Positions 3,079 through 50,900 of a stretch of 64,000 bases of DNA are shown here, one piece after another. The DNA lies in assembly GCA_977016875.1 (NCBI GenBank), contig CDRNST010000199.1, positions 248,001-312,000 of the forward strand. The letters run 5' to 3'. The position numbers and the translations under genes are program-made. The DNA comes from Pavona decussata. Taxonomy: Eukaryota. Under the pieces are notes generated by a model. That model did no database searches and had not been told where the DNA came from. It was given only the letters and a program-made list of their open reading frames with translations. Position 1 is the first letter of the stretch. The number at the start of each line of letters is the position of its first letter.

Positions 3079-6000
3079 TGCAAAGAAATGATCCAGAAAA
3101 TAACTTATTAAGAGGATTTGTTTAGGCCAAAAACACGTTTATGGGTTAGGTGCACCTTAATATTAATAGTCAGAGCCTGGAACCTTACCTCGATTTTAAT
3201 GACTGTTTGTGGTGACAAATCTGTTTGATAATGAAGTTTAGCTGATGCCAAACTTGTGTCCAGTGTAACACATGGTCTTGATGTCTGGCCCAGCACAATA
3301 CCTGATGGTAAACCTCTGGCTCGCTCGTTGAAAAATATCAAGTTCGGACCAGCTAATGAAAACAAAATAGCATTTAGAGGCTGCAACAGTTTGTGTGATA
3401 AAAAGTTCACTTTGGATGCAGATGTGGTTTGTAGCAACTGGGGCAAGTCTTGCATCTTGAGATTTTAGTCAAGTCTTCAAAACAATACTACCCTAACCAT
3501 CATTCCGGGGACTATGTTCCCTACTCTTTCAGAACAGTGTGTCGGTTCTTTAATGTCCCACAGATTATTTGGAACAAGTATTGTGAGACGGGACCTACGG
3601 TTTATCGACCTTATCTGAGAAGACTAGAAAGTCTAACCGTTTGTATATGCCATTACAAAGGCAACACTTTCTTCTCAGTTATTTAAGACCTTGAGTGTTG
3701 GTTCGGCCGAAGTTTGAACCCGCAACCTTCCGCACGGTAGTCTGGTGTTCTCAGTCCCATCTGACCTAACCAGTCGGCGAATACAGGGATTACTAGGTCT
3801 TACTACTCTCTCTGGTCACTTGTTCAAACTTCCGCACACGTTTGAGATGTAACGTTTGTCTATTGGGATAAGGCCCAACATCCAACGGTTTCCAAAAAAG
3901 ACAGGGGTATGGAGAAGGCTGAAAATAAAACAGTCCTTTCACATATATTCCAGTTTTTCATCTATCCTGTTTCTTCGCCCAAACAGCGCTTTCGGCTTTG
4001 AATATGTCAAAAATGCGATATTCAAGGCCGCTGCCTAACAAGATCCTGGTAGCCTAGTGCACCCACGAAAATGCTCTGGGCCCCAAATTTTTTTGCAGCA
4101 GCACCTAACACTTCACATGTTGGGCTTCTAACTTGGCGTTTGGCTTTGTCGGCCCCTTGAAATTTTTCTTAGGCAACAGCCTTGGATATAATTATCACAA
4201 AATCTTGATCTCACTTTTGTAAGTAGTTTTTACCTCTTAATACTTGAAACTTGGGTCTCACTTGAATAATTCTACAGTCTGAGTTTCCCCAGCTGGAAGA
4301 AGACTCCCTGTGAAACAAATACAGATATAAAGTATCACATAAAGTACATACTAGAACCTCAAAACCAAGAAAAATCCGTTAAAGTTGAACGGTACGAAAT
4401 TCAGCCCTTGGCTGCCATGTATTATTTTCAAAAAAATCTTATCTTTACCTAAAAATAAGGGTTTCACTTTGACAACGTCGACGACGAAACGTCGAGGTTT
4501 CACGATGATAAATACATAGGTTAATTAGATCAATTTACATTGCAGCTAAGTGGCTGAATTGCGTAAATTTACAATTGGCTGATATTATTACAAATTGTAG
4601 ACGCTAAAATTTACAAATTATCAAGGTAATTTACATAATAATAGGAGTTTTATTGTAACTTTATCTTTAATATTCACATGTCTTTGCTTTAGCAAATCTC
4701 TCTGACTTTTCTAATTTACGTTTGATCACGGTCACGGGCCTGGGTAAAATAGGAAACATTGCAGACAAATATGATGTTCCTCAGCCGAGTCACTTTAGCT
4801 GCGCAAGAAGCATATATGTTGTGGACCTAGATCATACTTCATGGGCGCAAGAAAATGTTTTTGAATCAGGTCAAAAACATTCTTGCCTCATGAATTCAAA
4901 TTTTTCTTCCGAAACATATCTTTCCAGTTTAGGCAGCGAGGAAACGTTTTACAACATACATGTTTAATATGTAACTCTGTTCCAGATCTCTTCTGACGGA
5001 TAATTGCAGTTTGCTTGGGACACATGTTTTCTAACCATCTAAAGGAAAAATAACATTTTTATGCTTCCTGCCAGTTTAGCCTCTCCGAAAACAATCATTG
5101 TGAATGTTTGCTTGTTTAGCTGTTTTAATGTACTGGCAACAGTCTGATACTATCAAGCAAGTTGCACCATAGAAAGGGCTAGCATCTCCTTTCACCCTCG
5201 CCATGTGAAACTGTGAGATCACGGTGAATCAAGCTGCCTGTGAAATAAAATTGCCTCAAACTGAAATATAACTACTACTAACAAGATAGTTAACTTGAAG
5301 TTCAACTTCCTCGTCAAAAATCATACAAAATTTAATAGTCATAGAATTCATGCAAGAAGCATATTGATTGTCATTTGATGATGCTGTCAAACCAACTGTA
5401 GGTGAGAACTTCCTCAGTTACAAGTATAAACAGGCATTTTACCTCCACTCCACATCAACAGCTATGATCAGTAATCCTTCATTTCCAACCCTTAACAGTG
5501 TAACAGTTGGTCCGCGGTATGCCATGCAGTGATGCTTAAACCTACAAACAGGACCACAGGAGGAAAGCTATTTTTGCATTATATTTTAAAAGTTTTTAAT
5601 TTGGGAAACAAATCAGTATGGTTACCGGTAAATGAAACGAAAAAAAAACAAAAAGTTTCCGCAATGGCCGAATAAACCATGAGATTGTACTAGTATTTCA
5701 TGGCATCACAGATCACCTTGAGTAATCTACTTCTGGCAATAAAAGTAACTCAGAGTTAACCTCAGTCTGATGATGCGAAATCAGGATCAGGGGAACCTCC
5801 AAACTTGTGAAGAGGTGAATCAGAAATTTTAAAAGAGACAGGCCCTAAAGCTTATCTAGAATCTCATTTTCAAGGTTTGTCTTCACGTCTAACAAGAAAC
5901 AATTCTTTGAAAAAGTAGTTTCTGTCACTTTTTCTTATGCCTTTATAGTCTCTACCATCCGATCAGAAACACAAATTTTTAACTGTTAAAGGTATAAAAT

Positions 6001-41600: not shown

Positions 41601-44600
41601 ACACAACTGGCAAAATGTGGCTCAATATTAGGCTTTCTCGACACGAGCCAGGTTGTATATGAGGCGGGTGGCATTTTCAGTGGAATTTAAAAAGTTCGAA
41701 ATCACCTTGTAAATCAGTCATACTCGGATGCAATACAGGAAAATGCCAGTCATTAGCTTTCATGGATGGTTTAAGTAATCGCCAAAGGCTCCTCTTAATC
41801 TCGAGCCACGTTTAAAGCGTAATAATATAAAGAACCACAGAAAATAACTGCTCAATATCAGTGAACCAACAAACTTGTTTGGAATTTATTCACCACACGA
41901 ACTTAAGACAGAAGCGCTTAGTTACTGTTCAGCAAGGAAGAACTGCACGCAAACCGCGCCGACAGCTATCACGTGGAATTTACCGGATGATTATTTCGCG
42001 ACCAGTGAAAGTGTAGTTTTACTGGGAGGGTCTTTTCTCCATGCAATGTAGTTTTACTGTCTGTAATTTCCAAGAATAAAAACAAAGCGAAGTATTATGA
42101 CACTGTAGTAGTACACACTGATTCAATTTGCTGAACTGTAGTCGACGCGTTCGGCTAGCTGTGTCTGATGAAATAGCACATGGTACAAACATTGAATATA
42201 CCTCGGTCATTCTGCTCAGTGCAGGACTGAATGCCTCACTGTAAGCAAAACCTTTTTCTTGGAAGATTTCCTATTCAAATTCTCTCCCTTTCTTAGCGTA
42301 ACTCGCTGTACCACTCCCCCTTTCTTTTCTTCGGCCGCCATTTCTCATTCTCACACTCGCAGTGCAAACGCAGTTGTTCAAATGTCGAACTTTTCATGTG
42401 CTGATCGGAACCTAATGTAAATGAGAGAAAGCGTTTTTTTTTTTTCCTTTTTTTTTTTTTTTAACTAATTTGCATTTGGTTAGGCACATGTAAAGTCTGA
42501 CGTTTCAACCGGGCCTAAGGCGTAAGGCTTTGCAATTTTTCACGCAACTTATCTGACAATCACAAGTTGTACGAATCGTTGCAACTTGTACTGACTGAAG
42601 TGAACAATCTTTGACAGGAGTAAAGCTCGATTCGACTTCGTAAAACGCTGATTGCAGACGAAACGTCACTAGGCGTTTTCATCTTAAAGCGTATTACACT
42701 AGTAACGTTTCGTTCAACAACTTGTCTCAGTTGTGTCACAAAGGCCCAACCATGCCGAAAATTGCGAGTCAAGTTGAAAAAAAAATTGCCCGGTGTATCA
42801 TAAACTTTAATTCCAATGAAGTAATTTGCTAAGGATTTGCTTCGACAACTTTGATAATCATTAAGCACCAGTAAAGAACACGTCAGTTTAAAATTTAAAG
42901 ACGCGGTTAATTTGCTTGCAAAGTGAATGTCAGCGTTTCAGTAATCATATGCAGCGGAGGATGGTTAGAGTCTGAAGCAATATGGGAAAGCAAGTATATT
43001 GGCTACCAGACATACCAATCTCTATTCATGGAATTCATCAACCTTGGCTTTAAAAGAGTTCCGTTTATTCATAACCAGACAGAGTTGCGTTGCACGGAAG
43101 ACATGATAAATACATGCTATTGTTGTCGCTCTTCGAGCTTAAGTCCCACATGACAGTACCAAAAAGATGATCGCTCACCACGGCAACTCGCTTACAGTGT
43201 GACACCGTCATTTCACCATCCATTTCAGGCCTTTCAACGCAGAACACTTCCACATGAATTTGTTTCCTCGATGTGTTTTTGTCGTGTTTAGTCTTTTTTT
43301 TTCCTCGTTCTAAAGGCGTGCACATGGGTAAAATAAACATGGCATTTCCTTTTTCTCCGGCTAGACTCAGCTGTGCTAATTTAAATATGAAAGACTCCCT
43401 TCATTGTCTCAAAAATAAAGCACGGAATGAATGACAAATCATGAATGTTTAGAGCCTCAATTTGTCTCCTTCCGTACTATGATTTAGTGTTTCCCACCTA
43501 CAGGTGATTCATGCCACCTTCCGTTGTTCTCGCTTCGAAAACTAACTTCTTAAAGTGTCTGTGTTTTGCTGTAAATAGAGAACCAAGTTGCCACAAGCAA
43601 GAATTTGCGTAGAATACGAAATTGAACGAGAATTTCCGTTTCAAATTACAAAGCGAAAGACCAACACGAGTGCTTGACCAAAAACAACAGAATTTCATAC
43701 ACTTCAAAAAGTACTTTATTTTTATCCTTCAAAAAAGGAATTTTCCGGATATTCTCATTGGAGATTCAAAAAAGCATTTGTTATTTCACCTAAGCATGTA
43801 ATTTTAGCGAGTCTGATGAGATACGGAAGCGAAAAGTTGAAATGAGTCAAGACTTGTTTCTTCAACGCGTGAGAGGTGAGCACATCAGAGACCGTCAGAG
43901 GTCACCAGTGCGATAGACGTGGTTGGCAAAACGTGAACAACACTATTGTCTGAAGTTTAAAGTTCAGTCATAGAGCAAGTTTGCTGTTTGATATATTGCG
44001 AAGGTTTATTTTGGTCTCGAAAACCTTTTCAGTGGATCAGTCAACTTAAATGGAAAATGCGAAGGAAGCCAAGAGGTTGAAAGCACGAAACAGTCGAGCT
44101 AAAACCAGTCATTATGTAAAACGTCTGGTTCGTATTTAAATTTGGAATTTGTGGGAGTAATTTCCGCTTTTCTTTGCAGTCTTCCTTTCTCCCCCATTGA
44201 TTCCTACTTGACAATCAAGAGTTTATAAACCTCATATTAACACTCAAACCATGAGATTTCTGTAATGTAATATTATGTATTGTACATTGACGCCTCAAAA
44301 TATGGCGTCGTTTTCGCCATCCGCGAGCTATCAGTGATCTGCTTGGATGGTTTCCAAATGTCTTTTCGAATTGTGCGAATATATTCATTGCCACCAAGTA
44401 AACCTCAAGCCATTCAAAAATTATTTGTTATGTCTGCAGTGTATAAATGTTTTCTTGCACGCAATACCGTGCCTATTTAGTACATACAAATTGGGAATAT
44501 AGCATTTTGGGGCAAATGCTTCTAAAATATTTTTGTCGCAAGCAAAGAACTTTTAGCCACGGTCGACCCGATTATTGATCTTCCTTGCAAAGCAAACAAC

Positions 44601-45977
44601 AGCTGTTCCATTCTGTTTCAATATCTAAGGATCTAATTTTGTGATGTCTGAAAATTAATATTCCCCCCACAAGGCCGACACATAATTTGCATGTATTCCC
44701 GACATCTCTTAACGACAAAAAAACTGTTTAAATTGTCAATAGAAAATGCCTTCATACATCATCGCTATATTCGTGTTTTCGTGCACGCAGCGGTAACCAG
44801 CTAGACAGACAAATTATTCAATACGCAAACTGTTTTTATAAGCAAGTAAGCAGAAGGCTCGCTTTTTGCTACTGTTGTCATCAAAGTTCTTTCTTACATA
44901 TATATTTTTGAATTCCATCTTCGAATTTCAGTGGTATAATACGAAAATAAAGAGAATCACGGGTTATATAGTTGAAACACGTGCACTTTAGGATTTATTA
45001 TACTGCAGCCAGCCCCTGTACTTTGTATTCAACCCAATTAAGAGTCGAGACCCAATATCACAGTTAAAGATTAGCTAACTTTTCAACGCACAGACACTTG
45101 CTTAAAGCAGATTAGCGATCGTGTTTTGCCCTTTGGTCCCAAATTTCATCCATAGAAAATTTCCTATCGAAAACATAGTGACAGCTGAGGGCTTTGCGCG
45201 TGGCTGGGTTTTAGTCTCATCCATAAATGGATGACAGTTGCCCAATGGCACATGATTTATAGGCCGTAATGTACACAAAGTGGTTTCAGCTAGTCTGACA
45301 AGCCTGAAAAAAAAAATATATAGCTTAGCTATGTCAAAAGGTAGCCCTCGGAATTAATCACTTTCATAAGCACTGGAAGACATCGAATGCTTCAATTGTC
45401 CCAAAGCAGGCTTTTAAGAGATTCATATTGTTCAAGAATTGAAGAAGCGAAACAGCAAAAATCGCTATTCTTTCAATCAGAGCGGAACGTCTACTCAAAT
45501 GTCTGACAAGCCGTACTGAAGGCAGATTAGTCTGGCAGCGGTGTAATTTCAGTTGGAATATAAACTCAACGGCTTATACCGGATGCCGAAATACCTCACT
45601 GGCTCATGCAACATCAATAAAGAATAAGAGTCACCATTGAAAATATAATATATTCATTTTTAGTGTATTTTTCACTCGTGTAACAACATTATACAACAAT
45701 AAAGCTGTACAAAGGATTGTTTTCTCCTATGGAGAGAAATCTATATGACTTTGGTTTCCAAATTTGGAATGTTCTCGGACTATGTCCGTGTTTTTGGTAC
45801 CTTAAATTATATTTTCGTCCAGTCAATATTCTATATACAATATACATAATATAATCTATGTAGGTATCATACTTGTGTGACTATAACTCTGTGGAATGCT
45901 TAGCTGGACGCGATCGGTGAAGAGAAAGACCAATTTGAGCAAATCATCGTTTATATAGCGTATCGCGTACACGCGCG

Positions 45978-47634
45978 TTACCGCGAGACATAAAGATGGA
46001 TTTCGACCCAACACGGGCAAGATGTTACCAGTGGTCTGCAGTACTTCTTCGAAGATGAAGTGGCACCCCAGCCTTTCTTAAAACTTATTCTAACCGATTC
46101 GGGATGATAGCATCTAACTCCAGCGCTGTCGACAGCCCGACATACTTGAGAAGAGAACTTGTAATCGTAAACCTTCAGTGAATAGCCGGGAGGAACTTTA
46201 TGCACCACAATATTATGTCTCAGTTTTCCACCGGGACTGTCTTCATTGGAGTAAGTCAGCGTAGGGCCATTTGCAAATAAAGAATAATTGCTTCGATTAT
46301 AAATCCATATTCCGTCGCCTTCGCGTGTTAACTGCAGCCCGTAGCCTATTTGTGACCGGACCCGTTTTGTCCCCTCCGAAACATCGCTGCGTCTGTTTAG
46401 ATCAGCCAAGCAAAATCCAGTGGGCTCGGGCAGCGACTCAAAAACATTGACAACGTCTGTTGTTCCTTCAAACGAAGGCCCGATTCTTTCATTGTGCTCC
46501 CAGTACGCGATTGAACACCAATGTTTCGGCCATTCTTTCCCAGCGGCAAAATGATAAGCTTCTCCTGAAAGGGCAAGGAAAATAAACTTAGTTCTGCCGG
46601 CCATACAGAAGATCACACACTGAAAATCGCGCTATTCTTCGTTTCGATAAATAATTGAGGGCATAGATATATTATGTTTAAGTGCGTAACCCCATTCCAG
46701 TGTGGAAATGAAGGAATCGGTAACCGGCCGAATGAAACAGTTGAAATCTAGAATAACAATACACAGCAAAAGGTCACAGAAAAATATTTCAATTCTTGTA
46801 CCTGTGGTTTGCGAAGAAGACAGCGAGTAAGACGTTCTGCTATCCAGTTGGCAAGTTGTGGACAGCGTTGGGTTGCTTACAAACCCTGTAAAGCGAAAAG
46901 AATAATTTGTGAGTAAAGCAGACGGATGATGTCTGGAAAAGCGCACGAACACGGACACATTATAACAGCGAAATTTTTGATCGATCGATGTAAAATACCT
47001 GAACTTTCGTCGTATTCGGAATCTACGACGCTCGGCAATGCTCTATAAATCCCACCGACTGGACCTGGAAAGAATCAAACAAAATAAATCATAACTAGAG
47101 CGAAACGAGAAAACAAGAAGGACCGTCTCGTATGCAAATAAGATGCAAAAGATGTTCTAAAAGCTAGCTCGTACACAAACTGACACAAGAGTTCGCTTTG
47201 TGGAGCAAGATTTCTAATTTTACGACGTAGAATTTACCTGTGCTCATTACAGCGCTGAAATGGAAAGGATTAATACACTGTTTCTTCTCCAGGCCATTAC
47301 ATGACGAACAAGAAGCGATATGCTTGATTTCGCTCGAGCTTCGAATCTGCGGCAGGCGAAATATTCGGAACAAAACAAGTTGTGGTTCGACCGCCACTCG
47401 TTTACCCAGTCTCTCGTGAGTTTGGAAGAAAATACAAGGCGTTTCGCAGCCGCCTTGCGTCTCCAATGCCCTTATCAGAACAGCGAAATCCTTCTCCTTT
47501 AGCCGTTTCAGGATCGAATGAGTTACTGCTTTGAGTTCAGCACTTTCGTCAGGCGAAAAATCCTTGCGGCCCGTAAGAACCGAGTATTTCTCGAGAAGGG
47601 ACAGTTTGCTGACAAATCTGAACAACTTGAACAT
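45978..47634 (-). CDS. SMAD6/7: Inhibitory Smad (Smad6/7 family); 4 coding exons, ~377 aa
   Basis: Exons 47634-47238, 47064-46999, 46885-46802, 46564-45978; all introns phase 1; 1134 nt. I-Smad MH1-like region (SILKRLKE..LIRALETQGG..C, CINPFHFS). MH2 domain (HWCSIAYWEHNERIG, GFCL, VRSQIGYG, IWIYNRS, VHKVPPGYSLKVYDY, SVRISFKKGWG, SCPCWVEI). No C-terminal SSXS, so inhibitory class. An in-frame upstream ATG at 47775 makes the start uncertain. Confidence 0.93.
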
Positions 47635-47739
47635 ATAACATTTGTTCCTAGCGATCACATCCAGCCGATCGGAGAGATGTACGTGGTCTTGAAAGCGAAG
47701 GAAGAAGCGATGCTTGCTGATCACGTCGCAAACTGAACC

Positions 47740-47980
47740 GTCTAGACAGCATGTAAGAAGCTGGCACATCCACATCAACTAATTCCTCTCTCAACCATAG
47801 CACACACAACGGTAACTGAGTGCCGACCTACCAGCAATAGAAACACAAACCGATTGGCTGATCAATGTCACGTGCCTGTCTAGACACATTGGCGCGTCTA
47901 TAGTTGTCTGATGTGGGTGTTACGTAAATAACAATTTCAATAAGCTTTCGCTAATGCTGATTGGTCAGGATAATGAGTCA
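47740..47980 (-). promoter_or_regulatory. Smad6/7 proximal promoter with palindromic SBEs, E-box, BMP-type GC element, CCAAT boxes and AP-1 site
   Basis: GTCTAGAC at 47878-47885 and 47740-47747. CACGTG at 47869-47874. Gene-strand CGCGCC-N5-GTCT overlapping the upstream SBE. CCAAT (minus strand) at 47853, 47888 and 47960. TTACGTAA at 47920-47927. TGAGTCA at 47974-47980. Confidence 0.75.
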
Positions 47981-50900
47981 GGCGGAAATCGCTCTTGACT
48001 CCCCCCAAAGATCGAATTCACAATAAGCCCAATCCACTTTGTTTGTTCCAAAGATGTCTGGTTTCTTTGTGGATTTGAGGTATTTTGTATTAACCATGTG
48101 GTGCCGTGTTAAAAGCACTTCTCAGGAGCGTCCAGATGTTTGGAGTTCATTCACTAATTCGATTTTAGGGTCGAAAATTTACCGCCGTTCATCTAATTTC
48201 TGTTCTGGCTGTTTTACACCATTCAAAACAAATTATAACAGAATGTACCCGTATTTGTATGCTCCCAAATTAAAATCCATTACAACTTGTAATCGAGGTA
48301 TTCATCGTCATGTGCCTAATTTAGCAAGATATTCAAATAACGTCACCAGATTATTGAATATCATGAGTTCATGTGATTTGTATTCAATGAATACAGACGC
48401 CACCCAAGGTCACCTTTAATCTTGTTTTAGTAGTCTGAACTGATTCCATTGAAATATTTGTCCCGCAATAACGTATTTTTTTATGCCGTCGATCAATCAA
48501 ATTTAGAAAGCGCTGTTGATCATGAATGGCGCTGTAGCATTGAACTGTGAATAATCCATGGCTTAGTCAGCCGATTTATTTTCTATGTCGCCCGTGTGCA
48601 TGAAATTCGTTCCGACATATTTCCATCGTCCCTCGATCCCAGAGCGTTGCCCTTTCGAAAATTGAGAGGGCACGAAAAGCCGAGTTTTGCTGGGATCAAT
48701 GTTGATCACGTGTTTCTGTTGAAATTTCGTAAGCATGGTACTCCATGTATGCGATCCTGAATGTCTTTCACTCCTCTTCTTTCCGCTACAGCATTGTATC
48801 GTGGCTATTAGCGTGCTGTTATGAAACCGACATAGGGGGAATTAATTACAATCCAATCACTGACTTTGTTGCCCACGTTGAGGGACTGCGGGTTTCTCGC
48901 TTGCAACTGCTTAGCGCATTTTAGTACGTAAACCTCTTACTTCCACCGCGTCTAGCCAGTTCTTAGATTTGATTTTGTGAAACGTTCCCAACGACAGTGA
49001 CAACAGTGTACCACCAGACATGGAACGAACTGATTAAATACACTCATATTTTGAGTAGACCGTAACACTTTCACGGGCCGCACGATGAACTACCTTTTTA
49101 TTGCATTCATTGAAATAATGTAGTAAACAATCACAAAAGTTTAGAAAATTTTTACGACAACCTTTATTTCGATGCGAATTACCTTAGCTTCGCGGCGGCG
49201 GGTAAAGAACAAAGCTTCAATAAACATGGAGGGCCTGGGGCCAAAACAGGAGGCCATGAGAGCAGGGGACTGGGTCGAGGTACTGAATTCATTCCAAGTG
49301 AAAAACTATGACACCGCAAACAAAGTTCAAAATTTATCCGAATATTTCTTATGACAAATATTTTTTCTCTACTATTTAGTCAGGCAAAGCCTGGCTTCTC
49401 CAGCGAACGTTGTTCCCCTGAAGAAGTCACGACGCGTCAAGTGACAGGAAACACTGGAGAAAATAAATATACACCCGAATTTTTTGAAAGGTGGCCGATG
49501 AAACCGCTTGAGCGCTTTTCGTGAAACGACACTGAATCACGGGTTTTATGGACCCAAGGAGGCTTGAGAATGATTCAGAGGAGAAAAGAAAGAAGCAAGG
49601 AGAGAGACAGGAGACGGAAAAAAGACTATGGAACCATTGTTTTTGTACTGGCAACTTTGGAGACAGAAAACCATTCAAACTATACTGACAAAGAAGCGGA
49701 CTCGTTTTCAAAATGCGAGAAGATATTATATAAAATCTCAGTGGTGCAGTCTGTTTTTCATCATTAGTATTTATTGCATTTTCTAGAATTTGCTCTGACT
49801 AAATACACCAGCATCCGGAGCCTTCAGTTTTGTCCAACCAGCGGCCAAATGTTGTTGTAGGCCTATATTCAGTTTACTTTTCCCACTGTCAGTTTTAACA
49901 GAGATATCATGGCTCTCAACACACCTGTCTATCAGTAAATACAATAAAATCTGCAATTCCACAGCGACAAACCAATGAGTGGTGCCGGATCACTTGTACA
50001 TGTAGACCTGGATCAGCAAATTATCTCAAGTACAAAATATTAACGGCAGACTGATCCCAACGGCGGAGGTGACGAGCTTCCTCGGGGGTTGAACGAAAAA
50101 GAAAAGTGAGAAACATAAAAGGATCGTTACAAAGAAGATTTAAAATATAAAATGCGTTAAAATTTCTGTTTATCAGTAGACTGAATGTTGTTGCCCTCAG
50201 TTACCTTTTAATCTTATCAAAATATATAATTGAGGTTTCGTTCTAGTGGCACATCTGCGAGTTATAGAAACTAAGGTGTTTTTGCACTCCTTTGCCGACC
50301 TATCACTGACGAGAATCTACCCTTGTTTAAATAGTCACAAGAGCCCTAATACTGTATTAACATAATTTAAATACAACCTTCTCGAATGTAAATTCTACAC
50401 AGACTGAAAAGAGAGACAAACTGAAAATAATAACCGAAAATAATACTGACCTCTCCTGACTACCTAAACTTAATCATAGTACAGCCGTCCGGTTTTGGTC
50501 TTGGCCGGAGCAGAAAAAAGAGTCCTTCATGTGCAACTGTATACTTGCTTTTTACCCAGTCTCAAAAGAAAGGTGCCATGTGTCTACTGTTTGTTTCATC
50601 GGTTTTTCTGGAAATATCCAGCCTCGTTCCCAGGGTCCTCTCCTATTCGACCGGTCAGCGGTGAAACAACAATATTTTGCCGGTTAGCAACACCGGCACA
50701 AAACGAAATCCAAGTTCTCCGAACAGGAATGGAACATATGACCTTCAATAACCCGTTCGGGTGCTCTACCATATTCATATTCAGTCTCTCTTTGACTTTG
50801 AGCCCGCTGCAGTTTAGAAAGAGTCAAGTTGCACGACGTGTGACTCTTAAGGTTGTACAGCTGTTTACTGCGAGTTCGGTACTTGTGCAGTTTTGTCTTT

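Follow-up and report, generated by a model that had tools for sequence, protein, structure and literature searches.

Does the promoter of a coral Smad6/7 gene hold the element by which TGF-beta induces its own inhibitor in mammals, and if it does, was that element inherited or reinvented? The locus that raises this question lies in a window of 64,000 nucleotides from Pavona decussata (assembly GCA_977016875.1, contig CDRNST010000199.1, positions 248,001 to 312,000), analysed as a whole and numbered here from its first letter. Upstream of an inhibitory Smad (I-Smad) gene, positions 47896..47867 of the minus strand read CGCGCC-AATGT-GTCTAGAC-AGG-CACGTGAC (contiguous string CGCGCCAATGTGTCTAGACAGGCACGTGAC); reading the strand directly gave the same letters as an earlier reading made from the sequence alone. 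Here GTCTAGAC is the palindromic 8-bp Smad-binding element (SBE) and CACGTG is an E-box. We consider it probable that the region is the proximal promoter of the coral's single Smad6/7 gene and that it carries an inherited, Smad-responsive module of ~90 bp. The element is well known in mammals; in the literature searched, we found no prior report of its occurrence at a cnidarian I-Smad gene.

A Smad/E-box composite upstream of a coral I-Smad gene

In the orientation of the gene, the sites that make up the module are the following.

47920..47927 (-), palindromic bZIP-type site TTACGTAA, inside a conserved TATTTACGTAAC, 42 bp 5' of the SBE
47891..47896 (-), GC-rich Smad site CGCGCC (GGCGC on the opposite strand), followed by the 5-bp spacer AATGT to the GTCT of the SBE
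47869..47885 (-), core composite: SBE GTCTAGAC 47885-47878, spacer AGG, E-box CACGTG 47874-47869
reaching 47867 (-), E-box with its flank, CACGTGAC
47853..47857 (-), CCAAT box, a putative NF-Y site, 11 bp past the E-box

Measured from the start codon (ATG 47634-47632), the E-box ends at 235 bp and the SBE starts at 251 bp, with the whole composite spanning 235-262 bp, in good agreement with the ~240 bp first estimated. The gene downstream (minus strand) had been named Smad6/7 on sight, and its domains bear out that name. It has four exons, with MH1 in exon 1 (Pfam match 1.5e-20, exons searched singly) and MH2 in the last exon (6.2e-41), and the C-terminus of the protein, ...CPCWVEIHLYVSR, is that of an I-Smad, without an SSXS tail. 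Spliced contigs of two public runs, X1 and X2, define the exons, and all introns are GT-AG.

47238..47825 (-), exon 1: 5' untranslated region (UTR) from at least 47825, coding sequence 47634-47238, GT donor 47237-47236
47064-46999, 46885-46802 and 46564-45637 (-), exons 2-4, joints taken from the transcript contigs
45980-45978 (-), stop codon, with the 3' UTR extending to at least 45637

The 5' ends of the spliced contigs fall at 47825 (X1) and 47796 (X2). All mapped RNA therefore lies 3' of the SBE/E-box composite, which is at least 44 bp from the furthest 5' end, and the CCAAT side of the module stops ~30-45 bp short of that end; the contigs give a minimum 5' extent and cannot define the transcription start site. 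Near-identical sequence is also present in 'coral metagenome' RNA libraries. Two 'metatranscriptomic' contigs, X7 and X9, were considered as transcripts and rejected, as they cover the whole locus (43500-48600) unspliced and at ~3% divergence. Both derive from the genomic DNA of some related coral lineage or haplotype, present in RNA libraries.

The coral composite has the layout of the mammalian SMAD7 element

One paper describes SMAD7 as the first natural vertebrate promoter in which the 8-bp palindrome was found, and its SBE with an adjacent TFE3/USF E-box element goes back to Nagarajan 1999, Stopa 2000 and Hua 2000, as later papers cite them. Stopa et al. (2000) state in their title that SMAD7's TGF-beta response element requires both a functional SBE and an E-box, and a 2024 review names TFE3 among the cofactors of Smad3, with PAI-1 and SMAD7 as the genes concerned (PMC11063908). 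The mammalian arrangement given in the sequence-only reading is borne out by a printed human SMAD7 SBE probe of 29 nt, AGCGACAGGGTGTCTAGACGGCCACGTGA (PMC5889486). Order and 3-bp spacer are alike in coral and probe, and 16/16 motif positions of TGTCTAGAC/CACGTGA are identical, the human side of this comparison being one published oligonucleotide.

The likeness extends to the setting: both elements stand in an I-Smad promoter, with a perfect GTCTAGAC preceded by a T and a gene-proximal CACGTGA. They also differ in several ways. The cnidarian and invertebrate version adds CGCGCC at -11 and a CCAAT box 10-12 bp past the E-box, whereas a fish smad7 promoter described below has neither. In the coral, ~250 bp rather than ~1 kb separate the site from the ATG, and at least ~45 bp separate it from the mapped transcript end. 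The coral also has a second SBE in its 5' UTR, and in some anthozoans the E-box can be replaced. For the coral, binding and inducibility are putative.

The GC-rich site recalls a second class of Smad target. BMP response elements (BREs), such as those of Id1, Vent2 and Smad6, and the activating element (AE) of Drosophila Dad, which is intronic, have the form GGCGCC-N5-GTCT. Together with the GTCT of the SBE, CGCGCC forms a putative BRE/AE-like GC-N5-GTCT composite, which had been described as a BMP composite with one mismatch. The spacing part of that description stood: the distance from the GC site to GTCT is exactly 5 bp wherever the GC site sits at -11, with a spacer fixed in length and variable in sequence. 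The hexamer, in contrast, matches GGCGCC at 5/6 positions only and is conserved as C[GA]CGCC; the coral form is thus CGCGCC/CACGCC and not GGCGCC, and its GTCT lies inside a full palindrome. On the opposite strand stands GGCGC, which belongs to the 5-bp GC motifs that Smad1/5, Smad3 and Smad4 bind (PMC11063908).

The module is conserved in cnidarians and bilaterians

Orthologous loci were recovered through their MH2 and MH1 exons, and the contigs were then retrieved. In every locus recovered, GTCTAGAC is invariant 5' of I-Smad exon 1, the loci being over 10 coral-like ones, Nematostella vectensis, two bilaterian-type invertebrate loci and one teleost smad7. L004 was left out because its contig is too short to contain the promoter, and L009 (P0015, MH2 43% identical), with neither an exon 1 within 10 kb upstream nor GTCTAGAC, is uninformative. 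The three bilaterian I-Smad exon-1 proteins were chosen blind to promoter content. The loci read as follows, with identities to the gene in the window.

L006, MH2 85% identical: GACGCGCC-aatgc-GTCTAGAC-aga-CACGTGAC
L010, Tara coral metagenome: ...-atg-CACGTGAC
L005, MH2 67%: ...-atg-CACGTGAT
L001-3, MH2 80%: ...-aag-CATGTGAC, E-box CATGTG
L008, exon 1 40%: GTCTAGAC-ttg-CATGTG
L007, exon 1 51%: GTCTAGAC-aag-CTAGTG, E-box lost
L011, Nematostella vectensis smad6 (NV2.13963), DS469604.1 with the SBE at ~380732-380739, protein EDO39628.1: GACACGCC-gacct-GTCTAGAC-aga-CACGTGAC-N10-CCAAT
L012, fish smad7 (Xenoophorus captivus), 960 bp 5' of the ATG: AGCGACAGGGTGTCTAGAC-gca-CACGTGAC
L013, protein P0056, 655 bp 5' of the ATG: TTATTTGCGCAAC...GCCGCGCC-aaaaa-GTCTAGAC-acc-CACGTG-N11-GCCAAT
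L014, protein P0185, 822 bp 5' of the ATG: CGCGCC-agtat-GTCTAGAC-cggt-CACGTG-N12-GCCAAT

The deep conservation that had been proposed was thus found on both sides of the split. Nematostella has the exact composite, all coral relatives have the SBE, mostly with an E-box at +11, and 2/3 of the blind-picked bilaterian loci (L012 and L013) have the exact SBE-N3-E-box composite, with a 4-bp gap in L014. The fish promoter also matches the coral at 16/16 positions over TGTCTAGAC/CACGTGA, the left flank of its SBE is the same as in the human probe, and TTGCGCAA/TTACGTAA stands ~40 bp upstream in fish and corals alike. The GCCGCGCC of L013 presumably resembles a Smad6 element; its sole match in a paper is an unrelated oligonucleotide.

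Counting positions from the first G of the SBE, we compared the layout over the 11 loci of one alignment (A2), in which the SBE is invariant (11/11).

-42 to -38, TT[AG]CG[CT]AA: window, L001, L005, L006, L010, L008, L013 (TTGCGCAA) and the fish L012 (TTGCGCAA)
-11, C[GA]CGCC: coral-like loci except L007 (-12) and L008 (none); also Nematostella, L013 and L014
+11, E-box: 9/11 loci, the exceptions being L014 (+12) and L007 (lost)
+27 to +30, CCAAT: 10/11 loci, missing in the fish only

The gap from E-box to CCAAT, 11 bp in the window, is 10-12 bp in 10/11 loci. Throughout the alignment the spacers are constant in length and variable in sequence, the usual footprint of adjacent protein-binding sites. 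Identity also extends beyond the 8-bp SBE: coral and L013 agree at 39/73 anchored positions outside it (null mean 18.5, z = 5.5), and coral and fish at 29/73 (z = 2.9). In Nematostella the upstream bZIP-type site has been lost, and ~165 bp are inserted between a conserved TATTT block and the GC/SBE module (L011 ~5430-5640) relative to all coral promoters.

When the exon-1 proteins were placed in a maximum-likelihood tree, the cnidarians formed a clade (95/95 support). P0056 and P0185 stood apart from it, alongside the I-Smads of vertebrates and insects, and it is by this tree that L013 and L014 are taken to be non-cnidarian. P0056 has the N-terminus MFRSKRHSLVKRLW, as in vertebrate Smad6/7. 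The deuterostomes with the element are represented by the fish promoter and the human probe, with L013 and L014 being bilaterian-type by the tree.

The composite is unique in the genome and specific to I-Smad promoters

Motifs this short can meet by accident, and GTCTAGAC alone reaches at least two copies in 4/100 shuffles of the window. The composite, however, arose in 0/100 dinucleotide shuffles. Across the 602-Mb genome, GTCTAGAC-N3-CACGTG has a single occurrence, at the I-Smad promoter, and CGCGCC-N5-GTCTAGAC likewise occurs once, in the same place. We also considered an origin of the promoter from a repeat or transposon, which its single copy in the genome led us to reject. Scanning 241 million JGI metagenome records for CRCGCC-N5-GTCTAGAC-N3-CACGTG gave 6 matches, and in all of them (6/6) a correctly oriented I-Smad exon 1, 69-87% identical to that of the window, follows ~240 bp downstream. 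Since all six are coral-like, they demonstrate specificity and not taxonomic breadth. In practice, the composite is a compact sequence tag for I-Smad promoters. Given also its recurrence in every orthologous locus, chance co-occurrence of short motifs is ruled out and keeps practically no probability.

A model for feedback control of the coral I-Smad gene

Read in gene orientation, the module consists of TTACGTAA (-42), CGCGCC (-11), GTCTAGAC (0), CACGTG (+11) and CCAAT (+28). The palindrome is the 8-bp sequence selected in vitro by the MH1 domains of Smad3 and Smad4 and crystallised with Smad4 dimers (PMC3185416). We favour a Smad-responsive promoter because of this selection and because GGCGC is a GC motif of Smads. 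In the mechanism we propose, complexes of receptor-activated Smads (R-Smads) with Smad4 would occupy the palindromic SBE, and complexes of Smad1/5 type would use the GC site at a distance of 5 bp. The partner of the Smads, on the E-box 3 bp from the SBE, would be a bHLH-ZIP factor. MiT/TFE or USF would fit the flank CACGTGA, and known binding preferences suggest that the CATGTGA variants of two lineages favour MiT/TFE. NF-Y may bind the CCAAT box 10-12 bp beyond the E-box, and a bZIP factor may bind ~40 bp upstream of the SBE. The output would be induction of the I-Smad and damping of the pathway, a transcriptional negative feedback of the kind experimentally shown for mammalian SMAD7. The sequence, its single occurrence in the genome, its place relative to the transcript and the layout kept in Hexacorallia, L013, L014, the fish and the human probe are observed; the binding proteins, the responsiveness of the coral gene to signal, the type of Smad that acts (BMP or Activin) and common descent are inferred.

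Inheritance and its alternatives

Inheritance of the module rather than convergence is favoured, and we hold it to be quite likely, because the module is present in every promoter recovered, its four to five sites are collinear, the identity of the flanks exceeds background and the layout does not recur in 602 Mb. It further appears reasonably likely that the module (bZIP site, GC site, N5, GTCTAGAC, N3, E-box, N10-12, CCAAT) was already in place in the cnidarian-bilaterian ancestor, that its spacing has been kept since, and that vertebrates have a reduced form. Convergence would instead require that SBE-N3-E-box and GC-N5-GTCT are physically favoured layouts for Smad MH1 and bHLH-ZIP proteins, gained independently in response to the same need for feedback. 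Short transcription factor grammars can be reinvented, and the SBE-N3-E-box grammar is also reported in PAI-1. A TFE3/Smad3 grammar at that gene (PMC11063908) and the BREs in many Nematostella pSMAD1/5 targets (PMC10849676) could be read in this way, as could the differences in ATG distance and surrounding sequence between cnidarians and bilaterians and the missing GC box and CCAAT box of the fish. Yet a commonly reinvented layout should leave other copies, and there is no second composite in the 602-Mb coral genome. Corals and L013 share four to five collinear sites at like spacings (-40, -11, 0, +11, +28), their identity outside the SBE is about twice the 18.5 positions expected, and the module was present in all 3/3 blind-chosen bilaterian loci. 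Convergence is, in our judgement, unlikely.

Another explanation accepts the element as conserved and denies it a Smad switch, making it a generic USF/NF-Y pair in which the palindrome serves another factor or a structural role. In human chromatin immunoprecipitation sequencing (ChIP-seq), NF-Y prefers an E-box-to-CCAAT distance of 10-12 bp with USF1/2 and MAX (Dolfini et al. 2016, PMC4889920). That general arrangement is what 10/11 of our loci show between CACGTG and CCAAT, although here the pair stands within a cluster of Smad sites and the fish promoter lacks it. Part of the Nematostella pSMAD1/5 target tables also omits smad6. What is invariant, however, is the exact 8-bp product of Smad3/Smad4 MH1 selection (PMC3185416), whereas the E-box varies. 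Beside the palindrome stand a GC Smad site, at the canonical 5 bp, and further CAGAC/AGAC boxes, a second perfect SBE is conserved 115-138 bp downstream, and experiments on mammalian SMAD7 have defined this element as its Smad site. We regard a module without a Smad function as improbable. An element acting in RNA, as a 5' UTR signal, would need transcription to begin further upstream, a start that the contigs cannot fix. The downstream 5' UTR is itself strongly conserved, with an upstream open reading frame (uORF) and the second SBE, and deeply conserved 5' UTR elements have a precedent in the RPLP1/2 genes (PMC4613772). Against this, both spliced contigs end 3' of the module (47825, 47796), the mammalian site is Smad-bound promoter DNA, and conservation falls on palindromes and known DNA-binding motifs whose spacers vary in sequence at a fixed length, a signature of protein-DNA sites. 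An RNA-level role is very improbable.

Several observations weigh against an inherited Smad switch and temper our confidence in it. The spacer of L014 is 4 bp, the fish module is without GC box and CCAAT, and the SBE lies ~250 bp from the ATG in cnidarians as against 650-960 bp in bilaterians. Among anthozoans the E-box is less constrained than the SBE (CATGTG in L001-3 and L008, CTAGTG in L007). The bilaterian sample consists of three loci and one published human oligonucleotide, and the sample as a whole is without medusozoan, octocoral, sponge, placozoan or named protostome loci. In that part of the Nematostella pSMAD1/5 ChIP target tables (two stages, PMC10849676), neither smad6 nor smad7 is mentioned, and in the text covered no pSMAD1/5 occupancy is given for Nematostella smad6; this is weak evidence against BMP-Smad occupancy at those stages. 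A search of the genome for the C-terminal family of MiT/TFE gave no match and was itself uninformative.

A close parallel to the coral module is Bicore1, a BMP-responsive Id enhancer with Smad, E2F and ATF sites that is conserved in protostomes as well as deuterostomes (Clarke et al. 2012, PMC3410860). Both are short clusters of Smad and partner sites whose order, orientation and spacing have been kept for >600 Myr beside a TGF-beta/BMP target, with an 8-bp palindrome as the most conserved core. They differ in the gene (Id, not I-Smad), in the partners (E2F and ATF as opposed to E-box, CCAAT and bZIP) and in the reach to Cnidaria seen here. The text of that paper never names Nematostella, and its sole mention of a cnidarian concerns another enhancer. 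In literature outside subscription journals, no paper links GTCTAGAC with Nematostella, and the best-ranked matches contain no invertebrate or cnidarian I-Smad promoters; a prior report is possible.

About half a dozen non-coding elements older than the protostome-deuterostome split, Bicore1 among them, had been counted as of 2015 in the literature covered (PMC4613772, PMC3410860), and it is extremely rare for a non-coding element to be recognisable in both cnidarians and bilaterians. The coral module is a candidate addition to these, and one whose mammalian function is known in detail, as the Smad/E-box element by which TGF-beta induces its own inhibitor. Should the module prove to be inherited, not only the genes but the wiring of the feedback too would be as old as the role of the pathway in axis patterning. 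The negative feedback of TGF-beta/BMP through Smad6/7 would then be one of very few cis-regulatory circuits that sequence can trace back beyond the split of Cnidaria and Bilateria. The grammar, with its spacers of 5 bp and 3 bp and its 10-12 bp to CCAAT, is directly testable in Nematostella, for which transgenesis and pSMAD ChIP exist.

Further features of the promoter, the 5' leader and the neighbourhood

Outside the module, the promoter and leader hold a number of other conserved sites.

48055..48061 (-), distal CAGA-type box CCAGACA, ~175 bp 5' of the SBE
47960..48023 (-), upstream anthozoan blocks: TTGTGAATTCGATC ~48023-48010, GATTTCC 47990-47984, distal CCAAT 47964-47960
47896..47910 (-), extra Smad half-sites CAGAC 47910-47906 and AGAC 47899-47896, in the block CATCAGACAACTATAGACGCGCC
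47740..47747 (-), second perfect GTCTAGAC, within the 5' UTR, ~+80 counted from the furthest transcript end; an upstream ATG (47752-47750) overlaps it

In the CCAGACA box, GAC is invariant and the whole box near-invariant over 8 anthozoan promoters, with AGCCAGACA in L007. Within the upstream blocks, ATTTCC and CC-AT are invariant in 8 taxa, Nematostella among them (alignment A3). The alignments also show the CAGAC/AGAC block CATCAGACAACTATAGACGCGCC to be near-invariant among anthozoans; the bilaterian loci are without it.

The CCAAT boxes (47964-47960, 47892-47888 and 47857-47853, minus strand) and the AP-1 type TGACTCA (47980-47974, minus strand) that the sequence-only reading had listed are all present, but they fared unequally in the relatives. 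TGACTCA was rejected as part of the module, being absent in L001, L005, L006 and L010, and is probably species-specific. The CCAAT at 47892-47888, in the spacer between GC site and SBE, was likewise set aside, as only the window, L006, L010 and L016 have one.

The second perfect GTCTAGAC, reported at 47740, is indeed present at 47747-47740. Corals, L008 and Nematostella have a copy 115-138 bp 3' of the first SBE, L007 has GTCTGGAC, and the bilaterian loci have no collinear counterpart. The upstream ATG (ACATGCTGTCTAGAC) on this SBE opens a uORF of 34 codons, 47752-47648 (-), beginning MLSRRFSLRR..., whose stop is 14 nt 5' of the main ATG. The upstream ATG and first codons are conserved among the coral relatives; in L008 the upstream ATG is in frame with the main open reading frame, and protein P0037 begins MLSR.... 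Because the upstream ATG overlaps the second SBE and is kept, the conservation of that SBE may be partly translational. The context of the main start codon, ATGNNATATG at 47641-47632 (-), is invariant in 8 anthozoans (window, L001, L005, L006, L007, L008, L010 and L011, the Nematostella locus) and includes an out-of-frame ATG 7 nt 5' of the main ATG, which suggests a conserved translational control of the I-Smad.

MH1 exons have eight other matches in the genome, candidate Smads to act in trans on the promoter, and one of them is a Smad2/3-type gene ~18 kb off. The MH1 exon of this gene (locus L021; residues ..LPFTPPIVKRLLGWK..KAVKSLVKKLKKTG..DEVCVNPFHYQRVETP) lies at 313495-313794 (+) of the contig, ~1.5 kb past the right end of the window and ~17.6 kb from the I-Smad promoter, with the two genes head to head. 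Vertebrate SMAD3 and SMAD6 are also linked, as are SMAD2 and SMAD7, and the coral neighbourhood may represent an ancient linkage of R-Smad and I-Smad genes.

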